Shown here in pieces: positions 8,796 through 37,290 of a stretch of 64,000 nt of DNA. A model generated the notes under the pieces. That model saw nothing but the letters and a program-made list of their open reading frames with translations. It ran no database searches and was not told the DNA's origin. Position 1 is the first letter of the stretch, and each line of letters begins with the position of its first letter. Location of the stretch: the IMG/VR virus record IMGVR_UViG_3300030202_003189, positions 62,001 through 126,000 of that record; one strand, 5' to 3'. The position numbers and the translations under genes are program-made.

Positions 8796-8846
8796 TATTT
8801 ACTGACAAAATTTCATGTGAACACGTCTTTTTTATGTTCTCAGGTA

Positions 8847-8891: not shown

Positions 8892-8924
8892 TATTAATAA
8901 CAAAGATTAAAAAAATTAAGTCAA

Positions 8925-10334: not shown

Positions 10335-10359
10335 CACATTTATAAAAAATAATTAAAAA

Positions 10360-12297: not shown

Positions 12298-12320
12298 GTA
12301 TTTCTAAACTTTATATAATG

Positions 12321-12348
12321 AAAAACCCCTCTTCGGAGGGGTTTTTTT
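12321..12348. terminator. bidirectional intrinsic terminator between MCP and cysK
   Basis: AAAAACCCCTC-TTCG-GAGGGGTTTTTTT with C(UUCG)G tetraloop; A and T tracts on both sides. Confidence 0.92.
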
Positions 12349-12349
12349 G

Positions 12350-13261: not shown

Positions 13262-13296
13262 ATGTTAAGAATATAAAAAATATTTGATAATGGAAA

Positions 13297-14976: not shown

Positions 14977-14988
14977 AATTTCTTTTAT

Positions 14989-14996
14989 TATAAATA
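14989..14996 (-). promoter_or_regulatory. putative late promoter element TATTTATA (minus strand)
   Basis: TATAAATA on + strand, 12 nt before the ATG at 14976. Confidence 0.55.
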
Positions 14997-14997
14997 C

Positions 14998-19181: not shown

Positions 19182-19970
19182 CTACAATTCTTTTACCTCA
19201 ATACTCCTATCTTCAGTAAAGAAATATTCTTTTTTTGCCGTTTCTAACCAGAAAGGACCCGCATCATCACCAATTAGGTGAGCTGGGTGGTTTTTATAAT
19301 TAAAAAATAGAGAACCAACTCTCATATTCACGTGTTTATATCCAACTTTCGGTATTGTCATAATTCTAGCATCCATGAATACTGACCTTAATAAAAATTC
19401 ATAAACAAAGGTTAATTTAATATTATTCTTTAATCCCCCTATTTCCTTAAATAAATCCACTCTCATTACCATCCCGTCAATATTAAAGTTAGGGTAGTTT
19501 AATAACGAATCTAAGTCAAGAACCCCAATCTCCTCGGAAAAGTTCAACGCCCAAACAGGTTCGTTTGTCCATCCTATAAATTTATTTTTAGGGTCAACGT
19601 TAGTTATTAAAGGTAAAAAGATATCTACGTCTTCATAGAATCCCATGTAATCTTTAGCTTTTCTTATCCATAGGTTAGATAATTCATCATCTACCTCTAA
19701 GATACAGAAAAATTCTGTGCCACAATTATCCACCGCAAAGTTTATTTGTGATGCGAAATTATAAGACCCAGTAGTGTTAACTAAAATGTTATAATCTAAA
19801 TCTCCAAACTCTGATTTTTTTATTTCAGACTCTAATTCTGGGGTACAAACTACTACAAGTTTCTCAGCGTGAGTTTGTTGATCTTTCACACTACCTAAAG
19901 CAGTGTTCAAAAGTTCCAACTCTTTATTTTCGTTGGTGTGTATTGGTATAATAATAGTAATATCTTTCAT
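19182..19970 (-). CDS. glycosyltransferase, GT-A / GT2-like
   Basis: ITIIIPI, QINFAV, FCILEVDDEL (DxD-type), LFKEIGGL, YEFLLR. Confidence 0.75.
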   Translation of the reverse strand: MKDITIIIPIHTNENKELELLNTALGSVKDQQTHAEKLVVVCTPELESEIKKSEFGDLDYNILVNTTGSYNFASQINFAVDNCGTEFFCILEVDDELSNLWIRKAKDYMGFYEDVDIFLPLITNVDPKNKFIGWTNEPVWALNFSEEIGVLDLDSLLNYPNFNIDGMVMRVDLFKEIGGLKNNIKLTFVYEFLLRSVFMDARIMTIPKVGYKHVNMRVGSLFFNYKNHPAHLIGDDAGPFWLETAKKEYFFTEDRSIEVKEL

Positions 19971-19971
19971 T

Positions 19972-21066
19972 TTAATTCATTTGTTTTGATGCTTCAAGAG
20001 CTTGTACCTTTTCATTCTGTTCTTGATTATTTAGTGCTATAACTAGTTCTTCTATCCTTTCCTCAAATAGTTCATTATAGAAAGAGGCTACTTCTCCAGC
20101 TTCTTTCGCTTCGCTAAACTCGGATGAGGTTTTTTCCATTTCCTCATATAACTCTTGTGGGACAGAATCTTCTAACCAGTTTTTCATCACACTTGCTGCG
20201 GTGTCAACTAACGTTAATTTATTGTTAGTCCAAATTCCATTCTTTTCGGTTAACCAATTAGGGGTTAAATCAGGAACTAAACCAATAACTGGAGTTCCAG
20301 ACTTCATAGACTCAATCGGGAAAGTACCAAACCCAGCAATAGGGTCTATCCAAACTGAAAGAGCACATTCCCTTAATGCTTCAGCGAATTCTGGTCTAGT
20401 TAAACCTCTCATATCTCTAAACGTAATCCATTTTAGGAATGGGTGTTTAATGTAGAAACTTTTAATAAAATTAGCGGTCTCTCTAGACTCACGACAATGT
20501 ATAGCAATAAAAGGTTTTTTTGGTTCCTTACTTTTTACAAAATAATCAGGTATTGTTGGACTAACAATTGAGGTTTTAATATTTGGAAATAATGAGTTGA
20601 CGTAGTTCTCTTGAGATTTAGTTGTTGTAAGACATCTTCTAACAGCGAATTGTCCCCAAGTTATCCCCGGTTTCATTAATTCAAATATGTAATCGTAAGC
20701 TTGAACAAACATGATTTTCTCGCAGTTTGCATCTTTTAATTGATCTAAAACTCCACCATAAATCTCTGGGAGAATTAGAAAATCTTGTGGTCCGATTAGT
20801 GCTCCTTGATTACTTTCTCCACTAACAGCCTCATGAGGAATTTTTTCATATCCATCACCTAACCAGGTTGGTTTAACAAAATCATCCTTCTCTGTTAGTA
20901 TTATTGCGTTATATCCTAGTTCGCGTAGAATCTTAACGTGTTCATATATAGTCGATACGGCAGCCATTGCCGATCCTTTAGAATCCATACAGAAAAAATA
21001 AATTTTATTTGTTTTGGTTTCTAGGGTTTTAATTGCGCTTTTTACTTTTTGTATTATTTCACTCAT
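19972..21066 (-). CDS. glycosyltransferase, GT-B / GT4-like
   Basis: DFLILPE and GFGTFPIESMKSGTPVIG (E-x7-E-like region). Confidence 0.75.
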   Translation of the reverse strand: MSEIIQKVKSAIKTLETKTNKIYFFCMDSKGSAMAAVSTIYEHVKILRELGYNAIILTEKDDFVKPTWLGDGYEKIPHEAVSGESNQGALIGPQDFLILPEIYGGVLDQLKDANCEKIMFVQAYDYIFELMKPGITWGQFAVRRCLTTTKSQENYVNSLFPNIKTSIVSPTIPDYFVKSKEPKKPFIAIHCRESRETANFIKSFYIKHPFLKWITFRDMRGLTRPEFAEALRECALSVWIDPIAGFGTFPIESMKSGTPVIGLVPDLTPNWLTEKNGIWTNNKLTLVDTAASVMKNWLEDSVPQELYEEMEKTSSEFSEAKEAGEVASFYNELFEERIEELVIALNNQEQNEKVQALEASKQMN

Positions 21067-21071
21067 TTTAT

Positions 21072-21665: not shown

Positions 21666-21706
21666 TATAATGAAATTTATTTCTAATCTTGTTAAAGTAA
21701 AGTTAA

Positions 21707-22372
21707 TTACATTCCATTTAATAACTCAAAAACCGCGTCTATTGCTTCATGACGATGGTTATCAGTTAATAATGATTTATATACGAATTTTGACGTAGAT
21801 ATTTTTGGTACCTCATGTATCGCAGAGTAATTTTTATCTTTAAGATCAATCTGTTGGTTATCCCCAGTAAATATCATAGTGGAATTCTTACCCAACCTAC
21901 TTAATACCATAGATAACTGAGATTTAGTTAAGTTTTGAAATTCGTCGATAATACACACACTGTCCTCAAAAGTTCTTCCTCTAAAGTGAGCCAACGAAAC
22001 CAACTCAATCTGCTCCTCCCTTTCCATTTTATCAAGAATAGGTGGTTTATTATAAACCTTTCTCATATTCGATCTAATCGGTACCAACCAAGGTTCCATT
22101 TTTTCTCTTTCAGAACCAGGTAAAAATCCATTATCTTCTGTAGAGACCGTTGGTCTAGTGATAATGATTTTATTACATTGTTTCTTAAAGAATTGGTCAA
22201 GTGCGATTTGTACCGCTAATAATGTCTTACCACTACCCGGTTTTCCAACAATAAAATTAAAAGGGTGTTTCAGTATTTCTGTTTTGGCCTTTTTTTGTTC
22301 CGGTGAAAGAGAAAGTGAAAATCTCACAGATCCCTTTGGTGGAGTTTTATCTTTATTATTTTTTGGTGACAT
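21707..22372 (-). CDS. phoH: PhoH-family ATPase
   Basis: GKPGSGKT, ITRP, GFLPG..EKM.PW, FRGRTF, IIDEFQN, SRLG, GD..QIDL. Confidence 0.93.
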   Translation of the reverse strand: MSPKNNKDKTPPKGSVRFSLSLSPEQKKAKTEILKHPFNFIVGKPGSGKTLLAVQIALDQFFKKQCNKIIITRPTVSTEDNGFLPGSEREKMEPWLVPIRSNMRKVYNKPPILDKMEREEQIELVSLAHFRGRTFEDSVCIIDEFQNLTKSQLSMVLSRLGKNSTMIFTGDNQQIDLKDKNYSAIHEVPKISTSKFVYKSLLTDNHRHEAIDAVFELLNGM

Positions 22373-23378
22373 CTAGTATTTTTTTTATGTTATCTATTAT
22401 TATTTTAGAAGGTCTTCCATTTTTCATGTAGAAATCCTTCATTCTTGTACTCTTAGTATTAGTTGCCCAGTTTATGGGGTTGATAATATTTTTATATCTT
22501 ACTCCGTAATCCGCTGACTCTACTTCTGTCCACTCAATATTATTTCTCATAACTATACATTTTTTAGAAAAAAATGGACAAGTCTTCATTAAACCTCCTG
22601 AGTCTGTAATGATAAATTTACAGCTTGATAATGCGTCTATCATTTCACTATATTTTGCGGGTGGTTTTATGGTTATATTTTTTGGAAGGACGATGTTGTT
22701 ACCTTCAATAAAGGATTCTGTACTGTGATGTAAGTAAAAGTCTATAGGTTTATTGTATTTTTCACAGAAAGAAAGAATTTTAGAAAAACTTTCAACATTC
22801 TGATTCTCTTTTCTATGAATTGTCATAACAGGAGGACCAACAAAAGTAATATCTTTATCGTAATGTTTATTAAGTAATTCGTATTCTAAATCACCAGACA
22901 CTATTTCATTATTAAAAAAGTCCTGTATGTATCCTGTTTCTCTAGGTGTGAATTGAATCTGTGATGCCAAGTCTGCGACTATCCTGTTTAATTCCTCCGG
23001 AACTTTAATATCGTTACATCTTCGACCGGCTTCTACATGACCAAAAGGGATTTTGTGTTTATAACAAACTAAAGAGGAAGATAAAGTGCTATTTGTATCT
23101 CCGTATATTAAAACAAAATCAGGTTTTTCTTTTTTTAATATTTCACTAAACCTTTCCATAGTTTGTGATATGAAAGATACTTCATCATTATTAGATATTT
23201 GTAAATCGTGATCTATAATAAGGGAAAACTCTTCTATAAAGTAATCAGAAACATTTTCACTATAGTGTTGGTTGGTGTCAACAATGATATGGTTAATCTT
23301 ATTTTCGTTACAATAATCAAAAATAGGTTTTACTTTTACGTATTGAGGTCTAGTTCCTATTATGCTAAGAATCTTCAT
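22356..23378 (-). CDS. UDP-N-acetylhexosamine 2-epimerase, non-hydrolysing (WecB/WbpI-like)
   Basis: GTRPQYVK, QHY, YGDTNST, HVEAG, PEELNR, TIHR.EN, ITDSGG. Confidence 0.88.
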   Translation of the reverse strand: MKILSIIGTRPQYVKVKPIFDYCNENKINHIIVDTNQHYSENVSDYFIEEFSLIIDHDLQISNNDEVSFISQTMERFSEILKKEKPDFVLIYGDTNSTLSSSLVCYKHKIPFGHVEAGRRCNDIKVPEELNRIVADLASQIQFTPRETGYIQDFFNNEIVSGDLEYELLNKHYDKDITFVGPPVMTIHRKENQNVESFSKILSFCEKYNKPIDFYLHHSTESFIEGNNIVLPKNITIKPPAKYSEMIDALSSCKFIITDSGGLMKTCPFFSKKCIVMRNNIEWTEVESADYGVRYKNIINPINWATNTKSTRMKDFYMKNGRPSKIIIDNIKKILDVTKK

Positions 23379-24177
23379 TTTTTCTCATTTTGTTTCTTTC
23401 GCTTATTGTTGCTCCTAATACTTCACAAATACTACCATTTTCTAACATTGTGTTATAAAGGGCTTGGGTGTCTTTGGGGAAACACGCACCTCCATAACTT
23501 AATCTTCCGTCTGGACCCGGTACGTTTGTGTGCATCTCATTTACCCATCCATTTCTAAGTATCAGATCTTTTACCACGTCATAACTAGAATCTAGTTTAC
23601 CACATAAATCATACATTTCATTAAAGAATTGTACCTTAACCGAATAAAAGGAATTTGCAAATATCTTCATAAGTTCTGATTCTGTAGAGGTACAAATAGA
23701 GATTTTAACATCCGGAAAACCAGACTTATATAGTTCTATAATATCCTCCAACTGTTCTTCATTTTCAGTATAACCTAATACAATATGTTTTTGTTGTGCG
23801 AAATCTTTTTCACTAGTTCTGGCGGTTAGAAATTCAGGGTTGTGTACGATATTAAGATTGTAAAGGTGAGAAATATTCAAACAAGTATTAGGTTGTGTTG
23901 TGCTTTTTATTACGATAGTTCCCCTATACTCTTTTTTATTTAGTCTATTTAATATTTCATGTATTGCACTATAGTCATATCCTCTTAATTCATTCGAAAA
24001 AAGTGTTGGTAGACATAAGAACATTATATCAGACTCAAGAGTAGAGTCAAAAGAATCAAAACTTTTATATTTGTCATAACTTCTGGTTTCATATCCTTTA
24101 TTCCTAAACCAGGAGTAAACGGCGTTACCAACAAACCCTCTACCAATAACGCTAATTATTTTCTTAGTACTTTTCAT
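23365..24177 (-). CDS. UDP-glucose/UDP-GlcNAc 6-dehydrogenase family, short form (270 aa)
   Basis: IGRGFVG, CLPT, IKST, HNPEFL, SELMK..ANSF, YGGACFPKD. Start set at MKSTKK (24177). Confidence 0.85.
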   Translation of the reverse strand: MKSTKKIISVIGRGFVGNAVYSWFRNKGYETRSYDKYKSFDSFDSTLESDIMFLCLPTLFSNELRGYDYSAIHEILNRLNKKEYRGTIVIKSTTQPNTCLNISHLYNLNIVHNPEFLTARTSEKDFAQQKHIVLGYTENEEQLEDIIELYKSGFPDVKISICTSTESELMKIFANSFYSVKVQFFNEMYDLCGKLDSSYDVVKDLILRNGWVNEMHTNVPGPDGRLSYGGACFPKDTQALYNTMLENGSICEVLGATISERNKMRKNEDS

Positions 24178-24607
24178 TGTGCATCCTTTGTGCTGGTACT
24201 CCCAACCATATTTCATTATTCGGTACGTTTTTGGTGACCACTGACCCAGCACCAATTTTACAATCATTTCCCAAAATGATATTAGGTAATAGTGTGGAAT
24301 TGGCACCTATTGCTGCTCCTTCCTTTACTAGTGTTGGGGGTTCTTTTCTCCAAGCACCATTAGAAGGTGGATTTTTATCGTTCGTAAAAACAGTATGAGG
24401 TCCAACAAAAACATTATCTTCAATAATAATGTTTTCTGGAATAAATGAACCACAACCAATCCTACAGTTCTTACCTATTTTAACTTTATGACCAATCTCG
24501 ACAAAGGCTCCAATTCTAGTACCTTCCCCTATCTCTGCACTATCATAAATGTTACTACTTTCATGTATATAAGTTTCCATATTTCTAAATGTAAAAAGTT
24601 TGACCAT
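24164..24607 (-). CDS. left-handed beta-helix N-acetyltransferase (WbpD/WlbB-like)
   Basis: Hexapeptide repeats, VFTND..P, AAIGANST, IGAGSVVTK, GVPA. Confidence 0.82.
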   Translation of the reverse strand: MVKLFTFRNMETYIHESSNIYDSAEIGEGTRIGAFVEIGHKVKIGKNCRIGCGSFIPENIIIEDNVFVGPHTVFTNDKNPPSNGAWRKEPPTLVKEGAAIGANSTLLPNIILGNDCKIGAGSVVTKNVPNNEIWLGVPAQRMHNEKY

Positions 24608-25505
24608 CTAATTTAACTTCTTTCTGTCTTAGACCGTCGATTAATTTTATTGTGGGTTCCACATCTTCAAGGGTAAACCCATTCCCTTTTAATATCTCTT
24701 CGTAACTAACTTTGTGTAAGTCAGTAAATCCTGTTGAGAACTCTAACTCTTCTCCGTTTATCTTAATAGACCTAAAGGGTTTCCATTCATCCCACGGGAG
24801 GTCCTCCTTCATGATACTTAAGTTGTATCTAACCTTGGCACCTTTAAGCCATAAAGTACCCTTAGATCTCTTCCCTGTGGTTTCCACCTTAAAATCAACA
24901 ACATCCCCGAATATCCATATTAACATATCAAAAAAGTGTACGCCAATATTAGTAACCACCCCTCCAGATTTATCTGAATCGCCTTTCCAGGAATAATCAT
25001 ACCAAACACCTCTTGGTGTTATATAATCTAATGTTACCTCATGTTGTGTGATAGGAGATATGTTTTTATATTTTTCTTTAAGTTGTTTAATGAGTGGATG
25101 ATGTCTCAGTTGAAGAATGTTGTATATCTTTTTTCCTGTTTCTTTCTCTAGACCTTTTAATGACTGTAGGTGTTTATCTCTTAGAACAAGAGGTTTTTCA
25201 CAAATAACATCACAGTCATTTCTTAGCGATAGTCTTATATGTGCATCATGAAGATAGTTAGGACTACAAATTGAAACATAGTCGATGTCATCTTTGTGTC
25301 GGTAAAGATGTCGATCAAATCTTTCAGCCTCTTTGAAGTATGCGGCTTGTGGGAAATGCTTGTCTATGTATCCTACCCCATCATAGGGATCAAGAAGTGC
25401 CACCAAGTTACTATCAGTATGTTTTATCGCTTCAACATGACGAGGGGCAATATAACCCCCGGCACCTATAAGTGCAAAATTCTTTATATTATTTTTTGAA
25501 CCCAT
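24585..25505 (-). CDS. wbpB: Gfo/Idh/MocA oxidoreductase, UDP-GlcNAcA 3-dehydrogenase (WbpB/WlbA-like)
   Basis: FALIGAGGYIAPRH, CSPNYLHDAH, ICEKPL, ILQLRHH, SWKGD..KSGG..TNIGVHFFD, EFS.GFTDLH. Confidence 0.85.
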   Translation of the reverse strand: MGSKNNIKNFALIGAGGYIAPRHVEAIKHTDSNLVALLDPYDGVGYIDKHFPQAAYFKEAERFDRHLYRHKDDIDYVSICSPNYLHDAHIRLSLRNDCDVICEKPLVLRDKHLQSLKGLEKETGKKIYNILQLRHHPLIKQLKEKYKNISPITQHEVTLDYITPRGVWYDYSWKGDSDKSGGVVTNIGVHFFDMLIWIFGDVVDFKVETTGKRSKGTLWLKGAKVRYNLSIMKEDLPWDEWKPFRSIKINGEELEFSTGFTDLHKVSYEEILKGNGFTLEDVEPTIKLIDGLRQKEVKLDGQTFYI

Positions 25506-26607
25506 TTATACAAGTTATTATCGTTTTTAATTCATTTTCAGTAAGGTGTGGAGATACAGGTATATGTAAAACCTCCTTACATCTTTTTTCGCATTCAGGT
25601 AGCGATTGGTCCCCAAAAATCTTTTGGTATATCGGTTGTTTGTGTAATGGAATTGGCCAATAAACAAAGGTTTCAACACCGACATCTGACAGACTTTTTT
25701 GTAGCTCATCTCTACCTTCTACTATCAGAGTATACAGGTACCAACTATGATTGTCAATAGTATCAGTAGGGTACGGTAATGTAACTCTAGGATTTTTAAT
25801 ATTATCAAAGTAATATTGTGCGTTTTTTTGTCTTCTTTTTAACCACTCATCCGAGGCACCATTTAATAATACAGTGAGGAATCTAGCTTGTAATGCATCC
25901 AACCTTAAATTACCCCCTATAGTCTCATGGTAGTATCTTTTCTTAGAACCATGGGCTCTAATCATTTTTATTTTATTATAGGTTTCTTCGCTATTAGTTA
26001 TCACAATACCACCATCCCCCAAACAACCTAATGTTTTAGCAGGAAAAAAACTAAAAGATGATGCTAGTGAATGTGTTCCTGAGTGACCTCCTTCAGGATA
26101 ATAAGAACCGAAAGATTCTGCGGCATCTTCAAATAAGAAAGCTCCTCTGGATTTACAAAAATTATTAAGTTCCTTAATTGATTTGGTTTCGCCGAAAAGA
26201 TGAACAAACATTACCGCTTTAGTGTTTTCAGTCCAAGCCTCCTTAAATTCTTTTACTGATGGATGAAAGGAACCGGGCTCATTATCTACAAATATAGGAT
26301 TTAATCCTGCAACTAATATTGCTTCAGAACTTGCAATAAAAGTATATGAGGGTACCAATACGTCAGAACCTTTAGGTAAGTCCAAGGACATTAAGATGGC
26401 TAACAATCCATCTGTACCACTCGAAACCCCTACCGCATATTTGGCTCCTGTATATTCGGCAAACTCCTGCTCAAATCTACTAACTGAGGGACCATTCACG
26501 TAAATCCCGTCAGATAATGACTTATCTAACTCCCCCATTAAATAATCTTTATAGGGTGCCAGCAACTTAGGATAGTCAAAAAATCTAATAGTTTCTTTTG
26601 TTTGCAT
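25489..26607 (-). CDS. DegT/DnrJ/EryC1/StrS aminotransferase (WbpE-like)
   Basis: VSSGTDGL, VPSYTFIAS, VHLFG, EDAAESFG, FSFFPAKTLGCLGDGG, NLRLDALQA. Confidence 0.88.
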   Translation of the reverse strand: MQTKETIRFFDYPKLLAPYKDYLMGELDKSLSDGIYVNGPSVSRFEQEFAEYTGAKYAVGVSSGTDGLLAILMSLDLPKGSDVLVPSYTFIASSEAILVAGLNPIFVDNEPGSFHPSVKEFKEAWTENTKAVMFVHLFGETKSIKELNNFCKSRGAFLFEDAAESFGSYYPEGGHSGTHSLASSFSFFPAKTLGCLGDGGIVITNSEETYNKIKMIRAHGSKKRYYHETIGGNLRLDALQARFLTVLLNGASDEWLKRRQKNAQYYFDNIKNPRVTLPYPTDTIDNHSWYLYTLIVEGRDELQKSLSDVGVETFVYWPIPLHKQPIYQKIFGDQSLPECEKRCKEVLHIPVSPHLTENELKTIITCINGFKK

Positions 26608-27718
26608 ATTTTAAGTAAAAGCTTTTAGGTACTAAATTTAATCTATATAAGACATAAAAGAAAGGCCTAAGTCTCTCAAATAGTCTTTTGTATGTTGGGT
26701 AATCGGTATAATCCTTTTTATCATTAGTCATGATATCGTTAAATTGTTCATCTGTTAAATCTAATCTTTTCTTCATTTCTACGATTAAACTATCATCCAT
26801 TTCTTTATCTTCCATCATTTTTATAAGGGCCAATTTTCTTGTCATCTGTCCAGATCTAATTAGAGCGGAATACTCACACTTTCTTAGGTCAATACCAAAT
26901 TTATTAGGAAGATAAAAATTATTTACAAAGTATGCAGAACGATTTTCCATGTGGTGACCTCCATACCATTCCCATCCATATTCATCATGTAAGAATTTTT
27001 TAGTTTGTTCTTTATCATAATCCAGATAATAAAGAGGTCTAATCCTTTTAATTCTTTTCACCAATAATTGTCTCATCCAAGGCCAAAAATCCATAAGAGG
27101 TAGCGTAGTTAGTTTAGTTTTTCCAAATAATTTATGTATTGATCTAACATATTTTGCATCTTGGTAAAACCATCCTTGTGGTGAAATCCCTTCGGTTCTA
27201 AATGAATGACCATTCCATATCCATTTTATACCATATTCTTCTGCCGCTTTATAAAGTGTGGCGCCAATAGCTAAGTCAGTACCAGAATCTAGATCAGGAA
27301 CCGAAGCTAAAAAAAATGAACGAACTAGATCGTTGTATTCCTTGTTATCGACTACATGGGTGTATAAATCAATATCTAAAGAAGTTATCATTCTTTCTAT
27401 GTTTTCTACGGCTATCTTTGAATTCCAGGTGTTGTCGAAATGAACAGCAAGTGGTCGTAAACCACACTTAACCGCTAAGTGTAATAGGTATGAAGAGTCA
27501 CATCCTCCACTCACACCTACAATTACATCGTATTTTTTCCTCTTACCATCCTTCTTCATCTGATTAATGACGTCATTTAGTATTCTACCCCCTTCCTCAC
27601 CAACCGGATATTCCTTATCTAACTCGACATCTCTTTCACAATAGTTACAAACCCCATCATTATTAAACTTGATGTAAGGGATAGTTTCATCGTAGATACA
27701 GTTATTACATATTTTCAT
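26585..27718 (-). CDS. N-acetyl sugar amidotransferase (WbpG/WbuX/PseA-like)
   Basis: CxxC...CxxC, PP-loop GVSGGCDSSY, LRPLAVHFDN.W, YGGHHMEN, SALIRSGQMTR. Confidence 0.88.
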   Translation of the reverse strand: MKICNNCIYDETIPYIKFNNDGVCNYCERDVELDKEYPVGEEGGRILNDVINQMKKDGKRKKYDVIVGVSGGCDSSYLLHLAVKCGLRPLAVHFDNTWNSKIAVENIERMITSLDIDLYTHVVDNKEYNDLVRSFFLASVPDLDSGTDLAIGATLYKAAEEYGIKWIWNGHSFRTEGISPQGWFYQDAKYVRSIHKLFGKTKLTTLPLMDFWPWMRQLLVKRIKRIRPLYYLDYDKEQTKKFLHDEYGWEWYGGHHMENRSAYFVNNFYLPNKFGIDLRKCEYSALIRSGQMTRKLALIKMMEDKEMDDSLIVEMKKRLDLTDEQFNDIMTNDKKDYTDYPTYKRLFERLRPFFYVLYRLNLVPKSFYLKYANKRNY

Positions 27719-28466
27719 AATTTTTTATTATTTTGTCAATTTCATTTTGTTTTGGGAATCTAATTAGTACCCCCATATTTTTTTTAGAGTAAACACACAT
27801 ACTACCTAATGCGACCCCCGAACTACCACTTATGATAGAATCTTGTATATCTTTTATCTTACCAACCCCACCACAAGATATAACTGGAAGATGAGTATTT
27901 TTACAAACTTCTTTAATTATACTGGTATCCATACCTTCCCAAGTTCCGTCCCTATCTACTGAATATAATAAAATTTCACCAACACCTAATTCTTCTAAAG
28001 ACTTAATATACTCAATTGGGGTTAAATCTACTGTTTTTTTATTAGAATGTCTATAAATTCGATATTTCCCCCAAAAATTCTTTTTTATATCTACAGAGGC
28101 AACTATACTTTGACTACCAAATAGTTTTATTGCCTCCTCTATAGTTTGTCGGTCCTCGAATAGAAGAGTATTAACTATAATCTTTTCTATCCCTAGTTGG
28201 AATAGCTTTCTCATGTCGTCTATTGTTTTAACACTACCCCCATAACATAACGGCATGAAACATTCTCTTGTTATCTTACGTATAACATCAAAAGGAATAT
28301 CTTTTTTAGAGATATCAATTAAAACCAACTCATCCACTTCCTTTCCGTTAAATATTTTTATTGCGTTCACTGCATCCCCCACATATGAAGGATTATCAAA
28401 TTTAACGGTTTTAACTAAGGAACCGTCTTTCAATAATAAACAGGGCATAATTCTAGGTCTTAACAT
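27705..28466 (-). CDS. hisF: HisF2/AglZ-type cyclase-like subunit (ammonia channel)
   Basis: RIMPCLLLKDG (lacks the catalytic Asp of CLDV), VDELVLIDI, SQSIVASVD, SVDRDGT. Confidence 0.85.
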   Translation of the reverse strand: MLRPRIMPCLLLKDGSLVKTVKFDNPSYVGDAVNAIKIFNGKEVDELVLIDISKKDIPFDVIRKITRECFMPLCYGGSVKTIDDMRKLFQLGIEKIIVNTLLFEDRQTIEEAIKLFGSQSIVASVDIKKNFWGKYRIYRHSNKKTVDLTPIEYIKSLEELGVGEILLYSVDRDGTWEGMDTSIIKEVCKNTHLPVISCGGVGKIKDIQDSIISGSSGVALGSMCVYSKKNMGVLIRFPKQNEIDKIIKNYENM

Positions 28467-28467
28467 A

Positions 28468-29067
28468 TTACAAATTTATAAAGTTTTCCATTAGTTTCAT
28501 CCCATATTTATGACTTTTTTCAGGATGAAATTGTACACCAAAAATGTTATCTTTAGATATTCCAGATGTAAATTTAATACCATAGGTGGTCTCTAACATA
28601 ATATCTTCTTTGTTGTCACACTCAACATAATAAGAATGTACAAAGTAAAAACGAGAATCTTCTTTACATAACTCTGATTTTATTGGTTTTACTTGATTCC
28701 ATCCCATATGGGGGACCTTCAAAGTAATGTCACTAAAGTTAAATTTTTTACATTCTCCTTTTACAAACCCTAGTCCCGATTGGTTTCCCTCTTCACTCTT
28801 TTCCATTAGTAATTGCATACCAAGACAAATCCCTAATATTGGTTTATGTTTTTCTATTACATTATGGTGTAGTTTTCCTAACCATCCGGAATGAATTATA
28901 TTATCCATACCATTATCAAAAGATCCCACTCCAGGTAAAACTATTTTATCAACTAATTTTAATTCTTCGGGGGACTTAACGATTTTAGTTTTATGATATC
29001 CTAAAAAATTTATCATCGATTCAACAGAACCCACATTACCCATTCCGTAGTCAACTATACCTATCAT
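28468..29067 (-). CDS. hisH: HisH2-type class I glutamine amidotransferase
   Basis: DYGMGN, LPGVGSF, GICLGMQ, VPHMGWN, FYFVHSY, QFHPEKS. Confidence 0.92.
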   Translation of the reverse strand: MIGIVDYGMGNVGSVESMINFLGYHKTKIVKSPEELKLVDKIVLPGVGSFDNGMDNIIHSGWLGKLHHNVIEKHKPILGICLGMQLLMEKSEEGNQSGLGFVKGECKKFNFSDITLKVPHMGWNQVKPIKSELCKEDSRFYFVHSYYVECDNKEDIMLETTYGIKFTSGISKDNIFGVQFHPEKSHKYGMKLMENFINL

Positions 29068-29591
29068 TTTCTTATTCTTATTAATCTCGCAGGGACTCCT
29101 GCGATTACACTATATTCTGGGAAGTCTTTGGTTACTACCGCTCCAGCACCAACTTGGGTTCCTTTTTTAATTGTAACCCCTGGCATAATTACAGAGTTGA
29201 CCCCTAAATCGGAGTCGTCCTCAATAATAACTGGTTTGAATTCTAATTCTTCGTGTAGTATCGGTTGGTTTATATTTGTGTCTTTATGATGACTTGTGAG
29301 TATTTTAACTCCTGGTCCTATACCTATATTTTTACCTATTTTAATACCACCAGCAGAATGAAAGAAACATTGTTGACCAATCCAGGTTCCCTCTTCTATT
29401 ATCATCTCATTTTTATAGTAACCTTTTAGAATTGTATTGTGTCCGATATAGACGTTATCGTGTATGGAAATGTTTTCAGGATGAAATAGGAGTACACCGT
29501 CCTCTAATATAGTTTTTTCACCTAGTCTCTTAAGGGAGTCTTTATTATAAAAACCTTTTTCATTTAATCTACCGTTTCCGTGACTTTCCAT
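29064..29591 (-). CDS. left-handed beta-helix acyltransferase
   Basis: Hexapeptide repeats, [15 protein letters not shown]. Confidence 0.85.
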
Positions 29592-30535
29592 TTGTCTTTT
29601 ATGTATTTTGCTGTTCTTAATATCCCTTCTTCTAAATCTATTTTAGACGTAAAACCTAAAACTTCCTTTGCTTTTTCTACGCTTGGTATTCTAATTGCAA
29701 CATCCGCTGATAATGGTGGATCAAAAACAATTTTAGATTTAGAGTTTAGAACCCTACAAATTGTTTGTGCCAAACCTAAAATAGTTATAACGGCTCTCGG
29801 ATTACCTATGTTAAAACTTTCTCCTACGGCTTTCGGATTTATTATACACTCTTCTAAACAATCTACAAAATCGTCAACGTAACACCAGGCTCGTATTTGA
29901 TTTCCATCCCCATCAATGTGAATATCTTCATTTCGTAAGGCTTTTTCAATAAAAATTTGTAACGCTCCGTTAGCTGACTGTCCAGGTCCATAAACATTAA
30001 AAGGTCTAATAGTAACTACTGGTAAATTGTATTGAGTCGTATAAGCTTTTGCTAAATGTTCTCCGGCTAACTTACTTACTGCATAAACCCATCTAGCCTC
30101 ACCAGCAGAGCCCGCCACTGTTTGGTCTTCTTCTTTAGATTTGAAAGCCATTGAACCAAAGACTTCAGAAGTTGAGAATTCTACAATTCTATCTTTAATC
30201 CCTAGTCTCTGACATACTTCTAAAACATTAGCCGTACCTATCATGTTAACCCTCATTGTTTTAACAGGGTATTTTATTACCGTATCAATTCCAGCAATCG
30301 CGGCTGCGTGTATAACAATATCAGGGAGATTAGAACTCATGGATATAGATAGTTTATCATAGTCTAAAATGTCTCCTTTAATAATTGTTAAATTTTTATG
30401 ACCACTTAAACCACTAGAAGATAGGGTATCCCTCTCAAAATTATCATATACAGTAATTTTGTGAGTTTTTATAAATCTTTTAATTATTGTGTTGGCGATA
30501 AATCCAGCCCCTCCTGTTATAAAAATCTTTTTCAT
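29564..30535 (-). CDS. NAD-dependent nucleotide-sugar epimerase/dehydratase (extended SDR)
   Basis: [41 protein letters not shown]. Confidence 0.9.
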
Positions 30536-31878
30536 ATTAATATTTCTTTTTCAAATTTAATCGCAACCGCCTTGTGAGTTGAGGTCTTATTGTACCATTC
30601 TAAACCGTTTTTGGCAATCTGTTTCATTTCTTCTACTGGTAATTCTAAGAAAGAAAGTAATATATTACCAAAATCATTTGGGTCTTTTCCTAGATGAATA
30701 ACAGGACAGTTAGGTGCGTCTATATTTTTATTTGCGGCTTCCATTGCTTCTGGAGTGAAGTTATTGATTGTGGCAAAGGTTATATTACCAGTCATTAATG
30801 CTTCAACCGTACTTCCCCCGAAATAACCAACAAATGGATTAAACTCATCTATGTATATGTGAGACATTTCTTTTAGTTTCATTATTTCACTATTATCTAT
30901 CCATCCAGTTTCTTTATCACATAAGTGTTTGGTTTTCTCATATGTTTGTGGTGTAATAAACTTAAACTTCTTTTTGGTACTATCTTTTGAATTCTTTTCT
31001 AAATACTCTATAACTTGTGTTGTAATACTTGTTATTAAATCGGTTCCCTTCATCTCTTTAGAGGTTGGGGCGTGGAAGATGATAATCTCATTAGTATCAA
31101 ACTTCTCATCGATTAACTTCTCTACCTTTTTTCTGTCTAAGTCTTTATCGTAAGAGGTATATAAAGTAACATGGTTTTCCTTCTTACTCTTCTCTTCAAT
31201 TCCAATAGAGTTCATAAACAAACCCATAAATTCAGGGAATATACCTGGTTTATCAAGACTGTTGGTTGGGGTGGTGTCATACCAAGAAAGTCTATAAAGA
31301 TCCACACCATGTATTAATTTATTAAAGTGATTAATCCCTATAAGGTTAAACAGTTGAAAATTGTTTCTATAGTGTGTCCCTGTATGGTATAAATGAATAT
31401 TTTTATTTTTTCCGGCTTTCGTATCCTCTAAAAGATTAATACCTGTCATTTCATTTATCCTACCAATCCCAGTTAGTCTGTTTACTGGATTCTCGGTTCC
31501 AGCTTTATTAAAAGTTTGTAAATATTTTTGTACACTCCTTTGTCCCTTACTGTTGAGTAGTTTTTCTGGTGCGAAGTCTTCTTGGAATGGAGATCTTTCA
31601 GGGGCAAATATGATATGATCCGAATCTAACAACCAATCTTTCGCAGATTTAACATCCTCTTCTCTAATAATAAGATTACCTTCGGCATCCATATCGTTTA
31701 AGTTATAGTCATGTTGTTTTGTGAATTTGATTGGGTGAGGAATTTCACAAATTACTTTAGATTCAAACTCATCGCAATGACTATTAATTGCGGCAGAATA
31801 CTCAGTCATAACATTTGCGTAATCTTTCCACCCTATAAAACTTACCTTTTTCTTTTTTATTTCTTTATCCCTTTGCAT
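30532..31878 (-). CDS. divergent GT-B-like glycosyltransferase
   Basis: IFHAPTS..MKGT, IYIDEF...[13 protein letters not shown]; inside the sugar cassette. Confidence 0.6.
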
Positions 31879-32453
31879 AAGTATATATTTTGTTTACCAT
31901 GTTGTCCTTCCGCAATAGCGGTTATCTCAACATCTAATTTTTTATTATATCGTTTAATTACCTCATCTTTATCCTTAAAGTGTCTTACATGACTCTCAGT
32001 ATCAAAACTGGGAACACTGAAAAAGATAACATCTCCCTTATTTAACCTATCCAAGATTTCCATATCAAAAGGAATGTGCTCGAAAAATTCAAAGGAACAG
32101 TATATTACATTATCGTGAGAAGGAAAATCCTTTTCCAAATCCATTAAAAAGAATTTCTTTCTTTTCCTATCCTTCCAATTAGAAACCTTACCTTTATTAA
32201 TCGCCTCAATCGAAAAATCGTATCCGAAGTACTTAATATTATCATCCTTTAACATGAGTGGAAAATGTCCTGGACCACAACCCAAATCAACAATAGTGTC
32301 TAGTTCTGGTCTTTCATATTTTATGTAATTCATAATATCTTCTACAGCACAAGTCCAAACAATATAATACATTTCCATTTCACTAGGCGAAACGTCATAA
32401 TCTCCTTTACTGTAAGCATTATCGTAATATTCGGCTTTTTGATATTCTCCCAT
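31857..32453 (-). CDS. class I SAM-dependent methyltransferase
   Basis: IVDLGCGPG, GYDFS, EFFEHI, FSVP, HVRHF. Confidence 0.85.
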   Translation of the reverse strand: MGEYQKAEYYDNAYSKGDYDVSPSEMEMYYIVWTCAVEDIMNYIKYERPELDTIVDLGCGPGHFPLMLKDDNIKYFGYDFSIEAINKGKVSNWKDRKRKKFFLMDLEKDFPSHDNVIYCSFEFFEHIPFDMEILDRLNKGDVIFFSVPSFDTESHVRHFKDKDEVIKRYNKKLDVEITAIAEGQHGKQNIYLCKGIKK

Positions 32454-32457
32454 TTAT

Positions 32458-33210
32458 TTAATCTTTATAAACAGCTTTTGAGACCTCCTGTAGTTTTTGT
32501 ACATACTTCCAATATTTAGTTTCTCTAACGTCGGTTAAATCTTTTTTTGGCCATATCCAGTTATTTCTCTCTCCTTCTAGATAATGTGAACCATGTCCTG
32601 GTGGTTCACCATTTGCCCAAGCCTTTCTTCTTCTTTTTAGAGTTCCTTCTCTTTCTTCTTTAGTTTTAGTATTTCCATAATTAATCATCATACCTTCTAT
32701 TACCCCTAGTCTCTGACCAGGAAAAGAAACATCATCTGCCAAATAACGTAAAACAGGATTATATTTGTGTATCATGTTAAACTTATTTAATGTTCCATAA
32801 TGAAAATAGGTGTTAAATGGATCTTTTTTTCCTCTTTCCTCTCCAGTGTTAAAAAAGTTAACACATTCTATTTGTGCTAAGTTAAAACCTCTTCTATCTA
32901 GTCTTGATAATGCATCATGAAGGGGTTCTATTGTTACTGGAAACAAATCACATCCATTATAAATTGCCCAATCAGGTTTTTCTCGGTGAAGGGTTTTTAC
33001 AATATCATTTTGTAACATCCTTAAATCAAAAGAGTCACCAGTATCTAATCTATGTGACGGAACTTTATTTTCTTGGAGATATTCCCAAGAACCATCAGTA
33101 GACATATTATCTATGATATATGGTTCTAGTTTATTTTGTTTACAGTATTCTAATTTTAATGGAAGATATTCTCTTTCGTTCCACACTGTTAATATACACA
33201 TTACTCTCAT
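32458..33210 (-). CDS. GT2-like glycosyltransferase
   Basis: VWNE, IIDNMSTDGS, PDWAIYNGCD (variant DxD). Confidence 0.7.
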   Translation of the reverse strand: MRVMCILTVWNEREYLPLKLEYCKQNKLEPYIIDNMSTDGSWEYLQENKVPSHRLDTGDSFDLRMLQNDIVKTLHREKPDWAIYNGCDLFPVTIEPLHDALSRLDRRGFNLAQIECVNFFNTGEERGKKDPFNTYFHYGTLNKFNMIHKYNPVLRYLADDVSFPGQRLGVIEGMMINYGNTKTKEEREGTLKRRRKAWANGEPPGHGSHYLEGERNNWIWPKKDLTDVRETKYWKYVQKLQEVSKAVYKD

Positions 33211-34781
33211 CCTACTACATTTATAAATTGTCCTATTATTCTTCCTTTACGTTCTTGTCCTAAAGCCCCTCCAATAAAAGGGAATAGTCTTTCTCTGTAA
33301 TCTTCTTGTAAACGATGAAGTTTATCTTCATCTTTATCTCTGGTTTTACTCTCATAGTGGTATGCCACGGCATCACTCACAAATAAATTAATCTTTCCTT
33401 CTAATAAAATTGAGAAATTTAATTCAGCATCCTCAAAACATTCCGTGTAGGTTGGGTTAAACCCACCAACCTTTAAGAATAGTTCTTTTTGTACTAATAA
33501 AAAAGCCCCAGTATTACCAACGACTGGTGCGACACCTTCAAAACTATGTCGATAAGCTTGTCGTAAATTATAGTGGGTTATTTCGATACGACTTAAACCT
33601 TGTTCGCTCAACCATTCTTTCTTTAACCATAATAACATACCACCATGTTGTACGGTATTGTCTTCAAAATGTAATCTAGCCCCAACAGTACCAACCTTCT
33701 TTCTATTTTTTATCCAAGTTGATACCATTCTACTAATAGCATCATTAATTAACTCAATGTCATTATTACAAAATAATAGTAATTCTGAATCTTCTGAAAT
33801 ATGGTCATAAACAACTTCATTATTAATTTGTGCAAAGTTATAGTAATCAAATTTTACTAGTTTTATTTTTTCATAATTTCCACAGAATTCTTCTATCTGT
33901 TTCATGTTCTTATCTTCACTCCCAGTATCTGCAACTATAATCTCATAGTTAACGTACTTTGTTTTGTTAACGATTGAATTGAGGCAATTAAAAAGGATAT
34001 CTATATTATCCTTTGTTGGGATTATGATTGATAGTTTTGGTTGTTTTTTAATGTAGGTTTCTTTCTCAGGATAGAAAATTTCAACGGGTACCTCGCTAGG
34101 TAAGTTTGAAGAGTAGGTTTCCACAAATTTAATTCTGTTTTTTTCCCATTCTTCGTTGGTTTCACCAATGGACTTATGTGTAATTCTAATATTGGTAATC
34201 ACACCTATCTTTACTTCTTCTAAATGATTTCTAAAAGAGAAGTCCACATCATAAAAATGAAAACCTCTTACTTCTTTGTTAAAATTCTTTTTTAATTTCG
34301 TACGATCAACACCAAAGAATAATCCGTCAACCATTACTACTGGTATAATATCATTTATAAAAGCTTTAGAGTATTGTGACTCCCAGGTCTTTCCTTCGTT
34401 AGAGTGATTTACAATACCCACCATATTAGACAATGGTTTGTTTATGTCGTCCCACCATCTTCCAGTTTCAGGTAACCTTCTTGTTCCGGCTAAACCTAAT
34501 ATACCATATTCCGATTCCTTAAAATGTGAAATGATTCGTTTTCCCCATTTTTTAGTGTTAAAAATAATATCGTCATGACAAAATATAATGATGTCATTTT
34601 TTGCCTCTTTAAGTGCCTTGTTATAGATTTCCGTTAAGGAGGTCCCATTAGGATTCTCATAATGTAGAACTTCAAGGTCTTTAACGCCACAAGTATCTGT
34701 TATGTGTTTTACATAAGTTTCTTCTAGTTTTCTTGTACTAAATACTACTGTTAATTTCATTTTATTTTCCTGTTGACCCAA
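33207..34781 (-). CDS. two-domain GT2 glycosyltransferase
   Basis: Domain 1: YN.A, FCHDDI, VDG, GFHFYD. Domain 2: SIIIPT, VADTGS, FCNNDI, TGAFL, VGGF, EDAE. Confidence 0.85.
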   Translation of the reverse strand: MGQQENKMKLTVVFSTRKLEETYVKHITDTCGVKDLEVLHYENPNGTSLTEIYNKALKEAKNDIIIFCHDDIIFNTKKWGKRIISHFKESEYGILGLAGTRRLPETGRWWDDINKPLSNMVGIVNHSNEGKTWESQYSKAFINDIIPVVMVDGLFFGVDRTKLKKNFNKEVRGFHFYDVDFSFRNHLEEVKIGVITNIRITHKSIGETNEEWEKNRIKFVETYSSNLPSEVPVEIFYPEKETYIKKQPKLSIIIPTKDNIDILFNCLNSIVNKTKYVNYEIIVADTGSEDKNMKQIEEFCGNYEKIKLVKFDYYNFAQINNEVVYDHISEDSELLLFCNNDIELINDAISRMVSTWIKNRKKVGTVGARLHFEDNTVQHGGMLLWLKKEWLSEQGLSRIEITHYNLRQAYRHSFEGVAPVVGNTGAFLLVQKELFLKVGGFNPTYTECFEDAELNFSILLEGKINLFVSDAVAYHYESKTRDKDEDKLHRLQEDYRERLFPFIGGALGQERKGRIIGQFINVVG

Positions 34782-35382: not shown

Positions 35383-35383
35383 T

Positions 35384-36082: not shown

Positions 36083-36093
36083 TCTTGTGTGAT

Positions 36094-37290
36094 TTATTTA
36101 TTAACAATACTTCTATACCATTCGGCTCTGTTTTTTGTAACTTCTTTAATATGGTACTTTTGAACATCCTCATAAAGTTGTTCCCCTAACTCTTTAATCA
36201 TATTTGGATTATTGATTAGGGTTTTAATGTGTTTGTACCACCATTTATGATTTTTTGTAGTTGGGACAAGTAGGGAATTCTTCCCATGTACTAAGTCAAT
36301 AGTATAAGGACCAAAATCCTGTGCGATAAGTGCTTTCTTATGGAAACCAGCCTCCACAACTTTTAATTGTGATTTTACTTTATTAAATGTTGTTTCTTTT
36401 AGTGGTGCTAAAGAAACATCCATTAAATTATAATTTGTTGCATAAGTTGTAATTGGCTTCGTCCATACTCGTCTATAGTTATCGTATATGTTTTTAGGAG
36501 TACCTTTTTTGAACTTTAGTAATTTTTCTACATCTTCTTTGTTATTCATTATGTCATAATCTGATGTCATTATTTGTTCATACTGGTACCATACCGATTC
36601 TTGTGGTGTGATCTTTCTGGTTCTTTTTCTTCCTTGTTGATCTATTTCAGTCATAGACCCTCTAGTATCGAAACCACATAAAACCATTTGGTATTTATCT
36701 TTTAGGGAGGGATCGGCTTTTAGTTTCTGAATATTACCACGTAATATTTCTAAATCGTGTTTGTGGGATGAACCACCAAGCCAACCAACTCTCACCTTAT
36801 CGGATTCTTCTGGGTTTGGAGTAAATTGTCTTTTTGATGGGTCGATAGCATTAGGGAATATCTCTACATTCCTATTATGTTGTAACATTTCCTCGGCAAA
36901 TACTTTGGTAGTTGTTGTTACATACTCAGCGGCTTGGATATTGGCTATTATTCGTTGATTAATTTTTTCTTCTACAATCATGGCGTGTGCTGGGTGTTCA
37001 GGACCAGGCATCCAATAATCATCTAAATCCATAATAGTGATAATCCCCCATTTTTTACAATCTTTAAGTAACCTTAGACAATTACCCCAATCACCCATAC
37101 CTCTATGAAAATGAACAATATCAAAATCTTGCCAATAGGTATCTCTATTAGTCCATGGGTTATAATTTATTTCTACTCTAAATTCGTTAGGGTAATATTT
37201 TTCTAATGCGATGTGAGGATCAATCGACCTGAATGAACCAACCCCTGTTCTATCTGAAGGGACAACTAATATTTTTATCTTTTCTGACAT
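36094..37290 (-). CDS. glycosyltransferase, GT-B fold
   Basis: GVGSFR..P, MDLDDYW, PNAID, VGWLGGSSH..DL, DVSLAPL...FN..KSQLKVVEAG. Confidence 0.8.
   Translation of the reverse strand: MSEKIKILVVPSDRTGVGSFRSIDPHIALEKYYPNEFRVEINYNPWTNRDTYWQDFDIVHFHRGMGDWGNCLRLLKDCKKWGIITIMDLDDYWMPGPEHPAHAMIVEEKINQRIIANIQAAEYVTTTTKVFAEEMLQHNRNVEIFPNAIDPSKRQFTPNPEESDKVRVGWLGGSSHKHDLEILRGNIQKLKADPSLKDKYQMVLCGFDTRGSMTEIDQQGRKRTRKITPQESVWYQYEQIMTSDYDIMNNKEDVEKLLKFKKGTPKNIYDNYRRVWTKPITTYATNYNLMDVSLAPLKETTFNKVKSQLKVVEAGFHKKALIAQDFGPYTIDLVHGKNSLLVPTTKNHKWWYKHIKTLINNPNMIKELGEQLYEDVQKYHIKEVTKNRAEWYRSIVNK

Follow-up and report, generated by a model that had tools for sequence, protein, structure and literature searches.

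The 64,000-nucleotide stretch of DNA analysed here (the window) is positions 62001-126000 of the 231,285-bp contig IMGVR_UViG_3300030202_003189 (= JGI Ga0183712_1000033; 100% identity), which is a marine myovirus contig and a lytic-type jumbo phage genome. On its minus strand the window carries a block of genes for the synthesis and transfer of modified sugars, and we interpret this block as a phage-owned glycan-biosynthesis locus that would produce diamino and amidino sugars together with a pentose side branch and place the resulting glycan on a phage acceptor, most plausibly a virion protein. We assign this interpretation a probability of about 0.5. The enzyme families involved are all known; what is new is the viral ownership of a complete pathway and the serotype-like, modular organization of the locus.

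The glycan locus is intact and phage-encoded

A preliminary description of the window had placed 13 sugar genes in one packed run at 22356-33210. All 13 are present there as intact minus-strand open reading frames (ORFs) whose neighbours overlap by 4-28 nt or lie 1-4 nt apart, and no in-frame stop needing readthrough occurs anywhere in the run. The family assignments of the 13 genes also hold, in the case of the GT2-like gene at 32458-33210 on weak evidence. The limits of the locus, however, had been drawn too narrowly: four more glycosyltransferase genes widen it to 19182-37290 and bring the number of glycosyltransferase proteins to six. The coordinates of locus genes given below all refer to the minus strand.

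Phage hallmark genes flank the block (portal, protease, gp23-type capsid, family-B DNA polymerase (PolB) and sheath genes). Both of its junctions with phage DNA, from the dUTPase gene to a GT2 gene and from the 2-epimerase gene to the PhoH gene, recur in the source contig and in three contigs from other samples, L001 and L003 (IMG/VR) and L101 (ENA), with protein identities to the window of 55-97%. The upstream junction is also seen in L002, which ends before the downstream junction; taken together, at least five independent assemblies repeat these junctions, and synteny with the window is conserved in L001-L003 and L101. The ratio of nonsynonymous to synonymous substitution rates (dN/dS) is 0.02-0.18 across the block, with dS near saturation, while the GC content at third codon positions (GC3) is 0.19-0.30 in the block and 0.21-0.25 in the hallmark genes (portal, capsid, polymerase and sheath), with overall GC content likewise equal.

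Close bacterial orthologues, up to 75% identical for the short-chain dehydrogenase/reductase (SDR), would be expected if host DNA had been misjoined to a phage contig or if the block were a decaying remnant. The recurring junctions, the matching GC and GC3, the low dN/dS and the intact ORFs rule this out, and in a tree the five close phage SDRs form one clade (support 99/98) within the bacterial radiation; we therefore give an artefact next to no chance. As the phage SDR clade nests in the bacterial radiation, an old, ameliorated acquisition is indicated. The proposal that the pathway is encoded by the phage is thus borne out by purifying selection, phage-like GC3 and junctions repeated in independent assemblies.

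Predicted enzyme types cover the proposed route to an acetamidino-diamino-uronic acid

By homology, the block holds enzyme types for every step between UDP-N-acetylglucosamine (UDP-GlcNAc) and the diamino-uronic acid sugar nucleotide UDP-ManNAc3NAcA, in addition to an acetamidino-forming trio, in agreement with the near-complete pathway first proposed. The predicted assignments are specific for WbpB, the trio and the 2-epimerase, and at the level of the family for the aminotransferase, the 3-N-acetyltransferase and the 6-dehydrogenase.

The WbpB-type UDP-GlcNAcA 3-dehydrogenase (24585..25505) matches PDB entries 3oa2 (WbpB; E 5e-84) and 3o9z (E 2e-73), with other, non-WbpB GFO/IDH/MocA oxidoreductases following at 5e-8 or worse. 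The WbpI/WlbD-like non-hydrolysing 2-epimerase (22356..23378; best PDB matches 8sxy/8sxv, E 1e-42) has UDP-2,3-diacetamido-2,3-dideoxy-glucuronate 2-epimerases as its top five PDB matches, at 150 bits versus 130 for the next. The genes of the trio are contiguous, and all three products score above their NCBIfam cut-offs: a HisH-type glutaminase subunit (28468..29067; TIGR01855, 234 bits versus a cut-off of 105), an AglZ/HisF2 acetamidino-modification subunit (27705..28466; NF038364, 313.6 bits versus 310) that also matches WbuZ at 259 bits, and a WbuX/WbpG-type N-acetyl-sugar amidotransferase of the PP-loop type (26585..27718; TIGR03573, 252 bits versus 203), in which SGGxDS and the N-terminal Cys pairs are invariant in alignment A1. 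The same adjacent set of PP-loop amidotransferase, HisH and HisF-like proteins is found in WbuX/WbuY/WbuZ of E. coli O145, AglX/Y/Z of Methanococcus maripaludis and PseA-type systems; no deposited phage genome was found to carry the trio.

The WbpE/QdtB-like sugar aminotransferase (25489..26607; DegT family, PF01041 E 5e-93) scores 250 bits with QdtB, 222 with WbpE, 222 with the Psychrobacter cryohalolentis-type 8e75 and 115 with 8vr3, and its family membership suggests the C3 type (QdtB, WbpE). The WbpD/WlbB-like 3-N-acetyltransferase (24164..24607) is a left-handed beta-helix (LbH) protein of 147 aa, shorter than WlbB (192 aa), whose best PDB matches are 4mzu, 7s43, 3mqg (WlbB) and QdtC; its nearest solved enzymes are all 3-amino-sugar N-acetyltransferases, and WxcM-like proteins are matched too.

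For the 6-dehydrogenase (23365..24177; TIGR03026 E 6e-34), the family first reported stands, and the catalytic motifs are present (Rossmann GRGFVGN, NPEFL and catalytic GGACFPKD). The protein is, however, a short, two-domain nucleotide-sugar 6-dehydrogenase of 270 aa that consists of the N-terminal and central domains without the C-terminal UDP-binding domain. UDP-glucose dehydrogenases are the enzymes nearest to it, its substrate is not readable from sequence, and pathway logic would give it the role of UDP-GlcNAc 6-dehydrogenase. A broken full-length dehydrogenase was considered and rejected: the epimerase gene starts 14 nt before the dehydrogenase stop, leaving no room for a C-terminal domain, relatives carry the gene at the same length (75-79% identity; dN/dS ~0.1), and there are more than 2000 short homologues.

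Short dehydrogenases of this kind (~260-320 aa, without the C-terminal UDP-binding domain) have more than 2000 members at E<=1e-5 and occur in marine glycan clusters, one of them at L005 10001-10900. The 120 best homologues (P0001-P0120) are all 166-323 aa long, and distant members (~30% identity) are found in Campylobacter CP220-group phages and Bacillus phage SP-15.

The five enzyme types of the Wbp pathway of P. aeruginosa O5 and the Wlb pathway of Bordetella are thus all represented in the phage, and its amidotransferase belongs to the family of WbpG (3-acetamidino). The phage system differs in viral ownership and in its two-domain dehydrogenase, adds a UXS/ArnA-type SDR and an N-acyl slot, and has no WbpL, Wzx or Wzy in the block.

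An SDR and a variable N-acyl slot suggest a pentose branch

The product had been described as a uronic acid that is further acylated or methylated. The diamino-uronic route stands, and an acyltransferase and a methyltransferase are present, but the SDR and the acyltransferase are not generic decorating enzymes, and a share of the flux probably leads, through decarboxylation, to a 4-N-acyl pentose.

The UXS/ArnA-type extended SDR (29564..30535; PF01370 E 1e-53) scores 418 bits with PDB 8vr2, the next solved relatives being UDP-glucuronate decarboxylases at 130 bits. UXS/ArnA-type enzymes have the motifs S-T-S-E-V-F-G and F-N-x-Y-G-P, and RmlB has T-D-E and N-N-Y-G-P; the phage protein carries STSEVFG, YxxxK and FNxYGP. 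The RmlB profile gives it the highest NCBIfam score, yet one far below the cut-off of that profile. The SDR is probably a UDP-(N-acyl)hexuronate C4-oxidase/decarboxylase, with 4,6-dehydratase activity as a possible alternative. We take 8vr2, 8vr3 and 8vr6 to be Psychrobacter cryohalolentis enzymes acting between UDP-GlcNAc3NAcA and 2,3,4-triacetamido-2,3,4-trideoxy-L-arabinose. The composition of the P. cryohalolentis O-antigen, with 2,3,4-triacetamido-arabinose, has been described (PMC8040287).

Orthologues of the SDR are 69-75% identical in the 80 best bacterial genomes, 58 of which are labelled Bacteroidota, and an aminotransferase gene lies directly beside the SDR orthologue in 70 of the 80 loci. 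Genes of the WbpB, WbpD and WbpE-like kinds are also found in many of these loci, as are the WbuX trio and an acyltransferase orthologous to that of the phage; the gene order in L083 and L086 is WbpE-WbpD-WbpB-SDR-aminotransferase-acyltransferase. A UDP-sugar dehydrogenase gene near the SDR orthologue in nine of 41 loci is uninformative.

The gene at 29064..29591 encodes a hexapeptide acyltransferase (Hexapep E 8e-12) and occupies the variable N-acyl slot. In 21 bacterial loci, an orthologue (56-63% identity) comes next after the SDR gene or the gene of the aminotransferase that goes with it. In L002 and L003 the slot holds a formyltransferase, with the ArnA formyltransferase domain as its nearest solved relative (E 1e-30), and in L094, a more distant viral contig, a PglD-like N-acetyltransferase adjoins the SDR. 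Since a formyltransferase and a PglD-like acetyltransferase are found in this place, the acyl slot would serve to acylate an amine, most simply a C4 amine formed after oxidative decarboxylation. A UXS/ArnA-type SDR next to a slot for N-acetyl or N-formyl transfer therefore implies an extra, decarboxylated 4-N-acyl-pentose branch. This arrangement recalls the ArnA/ArnB route to UDP-Ara4FN in its SDR with UXS relatives and in the ArnA-like formyltransferase of L002 and L003; unlike it, the phage lacks the dedicated 4-aminotransferase that so often accompanies the SDR in bacteria.

When the window was searched by tblastn with bacterial WbpE-like and SDR-linked aminotransferases, 25489..26607 alone was matched, and this single enzyme is closer to the WbpE/QdtB kind (206 bits) than to the SDR-linked kind (100-143 bits). 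A pattern search of 2.9 million IMG/VR viral contigs did not find the SDR-linked bacterial type. With one aminotransferase only, the pentose branch therefore needs a dual-specific or a host enzyme. The possibilities are that one enzyme acts at C3 and C4, that a host enzyme contributes, or that the SDR product is not aminated.

Glycosyltransferases and methyltransferase

The first gene of the block encodes a glycosyltransferase of 398 aa (GT398; 36094..37290; phrog_7162 E 4e-43, with weak Pfam GT-B matches) that is 74-88% identical in close relatives and 50-52% in contigs L102 and L108. A two-domain GT2 protein of 524 aa (double GT2; 33207..34781), conserved in all relatives, comprises PF13712 (residues 22-223; E 3e-28) and PF00535 (residues 251-399; E 2e-20). 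The 250-aa GT2-like protein (GT250; 32458..33210) is matched weakly by PF13704 (E 0.003) and by Atlas at 0.98 to viral GT2 clusters. Its gene is the most conserved of the locus, with 93-97% identity in close relatives, 75-78% in L102 and L108, and a dN/dS of 0.02-0.03; the AlphaFold2 (AF2) model of GT250 (pLDDT, the predicted local distance difference test score, 48) was not used. An S-adenosylmethionine-dependent methyltransferase of 198 aa (31857..32453; Methyltransf_23/25/11) is shared by the window and L101 and missing from L001-L003.

The hypervariable glycosyltransferase of 448 aa (GT448; 30532..31878) has no Pfam match. Its AF2 model (pLDDT 87) has a GT-B fold, with Foldseek matches to BshA, MshA, WaaG and T4 alpha-glucosyltransferase (AGT); these fold searches bear out GT-B but fit DNA, protein and lipid acceptors alike. 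Only 21 clusters of GT448 homologues were found among 5.8 billion proteins, and GT448 is ~52% identical in L001-L003, where neighbouring genes are 90-95% identical. The two remaining proteins are a probable GT-B enzyme of 364 aa (GT364; 19972..21066; weak match to PF00534, E 0.015), conserved with the backbone in L001, L003, L101 and L108, and a GT2 protein of 262 aa (GT262; 19182..19970; PF00535 E 6e-5, at the gathering score), conserved in L001, L003 and L108. In none of the proteins of the block does hydropathy exceed 1.75 over any 19 residues, and no family of priming (phosphoglycosyl)transferases, flippases, polymerases or ligases was matched among them.

Genes of nucleotide metabolism are interleaved with the sugar genes. 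They encode a dUTPase with an N-terminal extension of ~70 aa (34762-35382), a stand-alone PolB-exo-like 3'-5' exonuclease (35384-36082), PhoH (21707-22372) and an NT5C-like deoxynucleotidase (21072-21665), all on the minus strand within the glycan block, and could hint at nucleotide-pool editing.

Related phages share the backbone and exchange the sugar cassette

Across relatives, the backbone of the locus consists of the genes for GT398, dUTPase, double GT2, GT250, PhoH, NT5C, GT364, GT262 and a gp55-like protein, and a variable slot between GT250 and PhoH takes three states. In the window type (10.9 kb), the slot holds the methyltransferase, GT448, SDR, acyl slot, trio, aminotransferase, WbpB, WbpD, dehydrogenase and epimerase genes. 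In the type found in the Tara phage contig L102 (~8.5 kb), it encodes a GT448-like protein, an SDR, an RmlD-like reductase, a metallophosphatase, a PylC-like ATP-grasp protein, a 378-aa methyltransferase, a split formyltransferase, a possible deacetylase, the same aminotransferase (61% identity) and a different GFO-type oxidoreductase; an FdtA-like isomerase gene lies upstream of the slot, and the sugar genes span 2804-15257. The L108 type (~3 kb) has two unknown ORFs and the L102-type oxidoreductase. Despite these different sugar genes, L102 and L108 both keep GT398, double GT2, GT250, PhoH and NT5C; L108 keeps GT364 and GT262 as well, and the L102 contig ends before that position. Within the window type, the methyltransferase is either present or absent and the acyl slot is acetyl or formyl. 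As the cassette sits in a swap-prone slot running from conserved glycosyltransferases to PhoH, related phages would obtain different glycans.

The 141-kb IMG/VR contig L094 (locus 2552-15171) encodes HisH, HisF, WbuX, SDR, aminotransferase, WbpD and WbpB, three glycosyltransferase proteins and a 368-aa GT448-like protein, with three GT2 domains fused in one 811-aa protein; its locus has no dehydrogenase or epimerase gene. A WbuX profile found 11 contigs in IMG/VR, of which four are of the window type and one is L094; of the remainder, L095, L096 and L100 have incomplete sets.

That the pathway is uncommon in tailed phages, as had been suggested, is supported by searches of 50,697 deposited phage records. 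The block DNA (megablast) and WbuX and GT250 (tblastn) had no match there, WbpB had no orthologue but only generic oxidoreductase matches of 24-28% identity, and the SDR matched nothing above 32%.

The locus resembles bacterial O-antigen and capsule loci in its conserved flanks and inner part, its swap-prone variable outer part and its acetyl/formyl and methyl on/off variation. It differs from them in having no export or polymerization genes and in lying in a lytic-type jumbo phage genome.

Proposed pathway and glycan acceptor

In the pathway we propose, host UDP-GlcNAc would be converted to UDP-GlcNAcA by the short dehydrogenase, a step that we infer, and oxidized at C3 by WbpB, as specific homology suggests. 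The aminotransferase and the small LbH acetyltransferase would then yield UDP-GlcNAc3NAcA, by family-level homology, and the 2-epimerase would form UDP-ManNAc3NAcA, for which the homology is specific, as it is for the trio of WbuX, HisH and HisF2 that would use glutamine and ATP to turn one acetamido group into an acetamidino group. In the putative side branch, the SDR would oxidize C4 and decarboxylate the uronate, the same or a host aminotransferase would aminate C4, and the product of the next gene would N-acylate the amine, adding acetyl in the window phage and formyl in two relatives. The six soluble glycosyltransferase proteins, with seven glycosyltransferase domains, and the methyltransferase would build the glycan in the cytoplasm on an acceptor conserved in the lineage.

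A cytoplasmic, phage-owned acceptor is favoured because no priming transferase, flippase, polymerase or ligase is encoded and because the backbone glycosyltransferase families are virus-restricted. A virion or other phage protein is a serious candidate, though at somewhat less than an even chance, and DNA, the host envelope and some other acceptor are each doubtful to about the same degree. The preference for the virion is weak and derives from the absence of membrane components and of nearby genes for DNA base modification.

DNA hypermodification, in which the glycosyltransferases would put sugars on a hydroxylated or hydroxymethylated base to evade restriction and cassette swapping would reflect an arms race with modification-dependent nucleases, is an unlikely reading but one to be taken seriously. 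The block is interleaved with the dUTPase, PolB-exo-like exonuclease, PhoH and NT5C-like deoxynucleotidase genes, and the top-ranking structural and embedding neighbours of GT448 include T4 AGT; that similarity is, however, no better than the similarity to BshA, MshA and WaaG (template modelling (TM) score ~0.5), and PF11440 is not matched. Known phage DNA glycans can be complex, requiring several glycosyltransferases and sugar-nucleotide enzymes, and include uronic acids, Kdo, heptose and up to trisaccharides (bioRxiv 10.1101/2023.12.21.572611; PMC13326640). The locus shares with such clusters its several glycosyltransferases and sugar-nucleotide tailoring enzymes near nucleotide-metabolism genes, but its seven glycosyltransferase domains and 13-gene sugar pathway exceed the DNA glycans of these two sources. 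In described DNA glycosylation systems, moreover, base-modifying genes adjoin the glycosyltransferase genes (bioRxiv 10.1101/2023.12.21.572611), whereas contig positions 16.8-141.6 kb showed no gene for a thymidylate-synthase-like protein, hydroxymethylase, 5mYOX/TET/JBP protein or C5-methyltransferase. The 45 kb upstream and 16 kb downstream hold no DNA-modification, second aminotransferase or nucleotidyltransferase genes.

We also consider it unlikely that the locus remodels the host envelope, with soluble glycosyltransferases acting on undecaprenyl-linked lipopolysaccharide, capsule or O-glycan intermediates that host flippases export, possibly to block superinfection or to alter the anchoring of type IX secretion system (T9SS) cargo. 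Orthologues of the SDR, WbuX, WbpB and acyltransferase (50-75% identity) do occur in bacterial glycan loci, 58 of the 80 best being labelled Bacteroidota, and peripheral glycosyltransferases need no membrane segment. Wbp-pathway diamino-uronic sugars link T9SS cargo in Bacteroidota (PMC7468200), and elsewhere the phage itself has a 1262-aa protein whose C-terminal domain is of the T9SS kind and a weak match to PAP2 lipid phosphatases. Against this, no priming phosphoglycosyltransferase, flippase, polymerase or ligase was found in the block, GT448 and GT250 belong to virus-restricted families, and, with the glycosyltransferase backbone kept where sugar cassettes differ, an acceptor owned by the phage is a better fit than host intermediates that vary. 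It is temperate phages that typically bring about seroconversion, and lysogeny genes were not seen.

Several points weigh against a phage-owned glycan on a virion protein. The dehydrogenase has no UDP-binding domain and leaves its substrate unspecified by sequence, only one aminotransferase is encoded, with no dedicated 4-aminotransferase beside the SDR, and the decarboxylase activity of 8vr2 is our own presumption. The assignment of the acceptor is pure inference, the dUTPase, exonuclease, PhoH and NT5C-like nucleotidase genes within the block are company typical of DNA-modifying genes, and the inspection for DNA-modification genes covers 125 of the 231 kb of the contig.

A more specific form of the virion-glycan interpretation, which we put forward tentatively and hold to be rather improbable in all its parts, is that virus-specific glycosyltransferases decorate the virion (less likely DNA) and that the swappable cassette sets the terminal sugars. 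Here these would be an acetamidino-diamino-uronic acid and a 2,3,4-triamino-pentose made via a dual-specificity aminotransferase, in jumbo phages of marine Bacteroidota.

Source phage and neighbouring genes

The hallmark genes of the window encode a T4-type portal protein, a gp23-type major capsid protein, a prohead protease, PolB, an SNF2-type helicase and a pair of tail-sheath paralogues of very large size. A portal protein identical to that of the window is found on 10 contigs, and since these include Tara Oceans assemblies, we consider the phage marine. Among deposited capsid proteins the nearest, at only ~40% identity, are those of Microcystis phage Mel-JY01, Flavobacterium phage immuto and an uncultured phage of 484 kb. 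A Bacteroidota host is suggested by the nearest cellular orthologues of the cassette enzymes, most of which come from that phylum, and by the T9SS C-terminal domain of the 1262-aa protein encoded upstream of the window.

The major capsid protein (10360-12297) has 645 aa, and because T4 gp23-type matches cover 50-59% of it, in two pieces, it probably contains a large inserted or added domain. The adjacent tail-sheath paralogues at 56654-59470 (938 aa) and 59492-62974 (1160 aa) are unusually large, and both match phrog_23. At the far end of the minus-strand block that contains the glycan genes, 12350-13261 (-) encodes a pyridoxal phosphate (PLP)-dependent fold-type II enzyme (PF00291 E 2e-65; phrog_11528) that is cysteine-synthase or deaminase-like. 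Divergent from the glycan block are genes for a 1256-aa protein with no Pfam or PHROGs match (37404-41174 (+)) and for a 963-aa protein that matches virion-structural and tail-spike PHROGs (41610-44501 (+)).

The product of 18461-19180 (-) weakly matches T4 gp55-type late sigma factors (phrog_234 E 6e-4; Sigma70_r2 E 0.16), and its gene is conserved in L001, L003, L094 and L108. The T4-type late promoter motif TATAAATA occurs 15 times in the window versus 14.3 expected and is not enriched, and therefore gives no timing signal. Scans for sigma-70 promoters and terminators were at chance level, and no tRNAs were found.

Outside the window, the contig encodes glutamine synthetase, an 817-aa ClpB-like (Clp-type) chaperone and an M23 peptidase, and upstream lies the gene for the 1262-aa protein with the T9SS C-terminal sorting domain (Por_Secre_tail) and the weak PAP2 match (genes beyond the window: L090 3429-4502 and 7462-9915; L092 1-389; L103 420-1160 and 6216-10004). 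Structural proteins of 1424 and 2746 aa are encoded downstream. Glutamine synthetase and a Clp-type chaperone are among the described traits of moraphages (PMC12619734), and the likeness to them consists of shared traits only: an aquatic origin, a genome of >200 kb, these two proteins, several glycosyltransferases and Bacteroidota signals.

Significance

To our knowledge, glycans made by tailed phages are known only as the work of a few glycosyltransferases on actinophage virions or as DNA sugars. The phage described here is a tailed phage with a complete bacterial-type diamino-sugar pathway of ~11 sugar-nucleotide enzymes, together with six glycosyltransferase proteins. Giant eukaryotic viruses have their own sugar-nucleotide pathways and virus-made virion glycans, and the locus is like theirs in combining sugar-nucleotide enzymes with soluble glycosyltransferases while encoding no host membrane machinery. 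Mycobacteriophages glycosylate capsids and tails (Freeman et al. 2023, cited in PMC12619734). They are known to encode only glycosyltransferases. The window phage has a sugar pathway besides its glycosyltransferases, and its predicted sugar chemistry is of the bacterial O-antigen type.

The enzymology is testable: do the widespread nucleotide-sugar dehydrogenases of 270 aa function without a UDP-binding domain, and can one aminotransferase serve both C3 and C4? If the specific form of the interpretation is true, no phage before it was known to synthesize acetamidino-diamino-uronic acid and 2,3,4-triamino-pentose itself. Should DNA be the acceptor, no DNA glycan known would be as elaborate. Among relatives of the phage the sugar cassette is swapped in much the way that O-antigen genes are among bacteria, and if the glycan is on the virion, the particles would have variable "serotypes", with a bearing on adsorption, aggregation, grazing and immune recognition.

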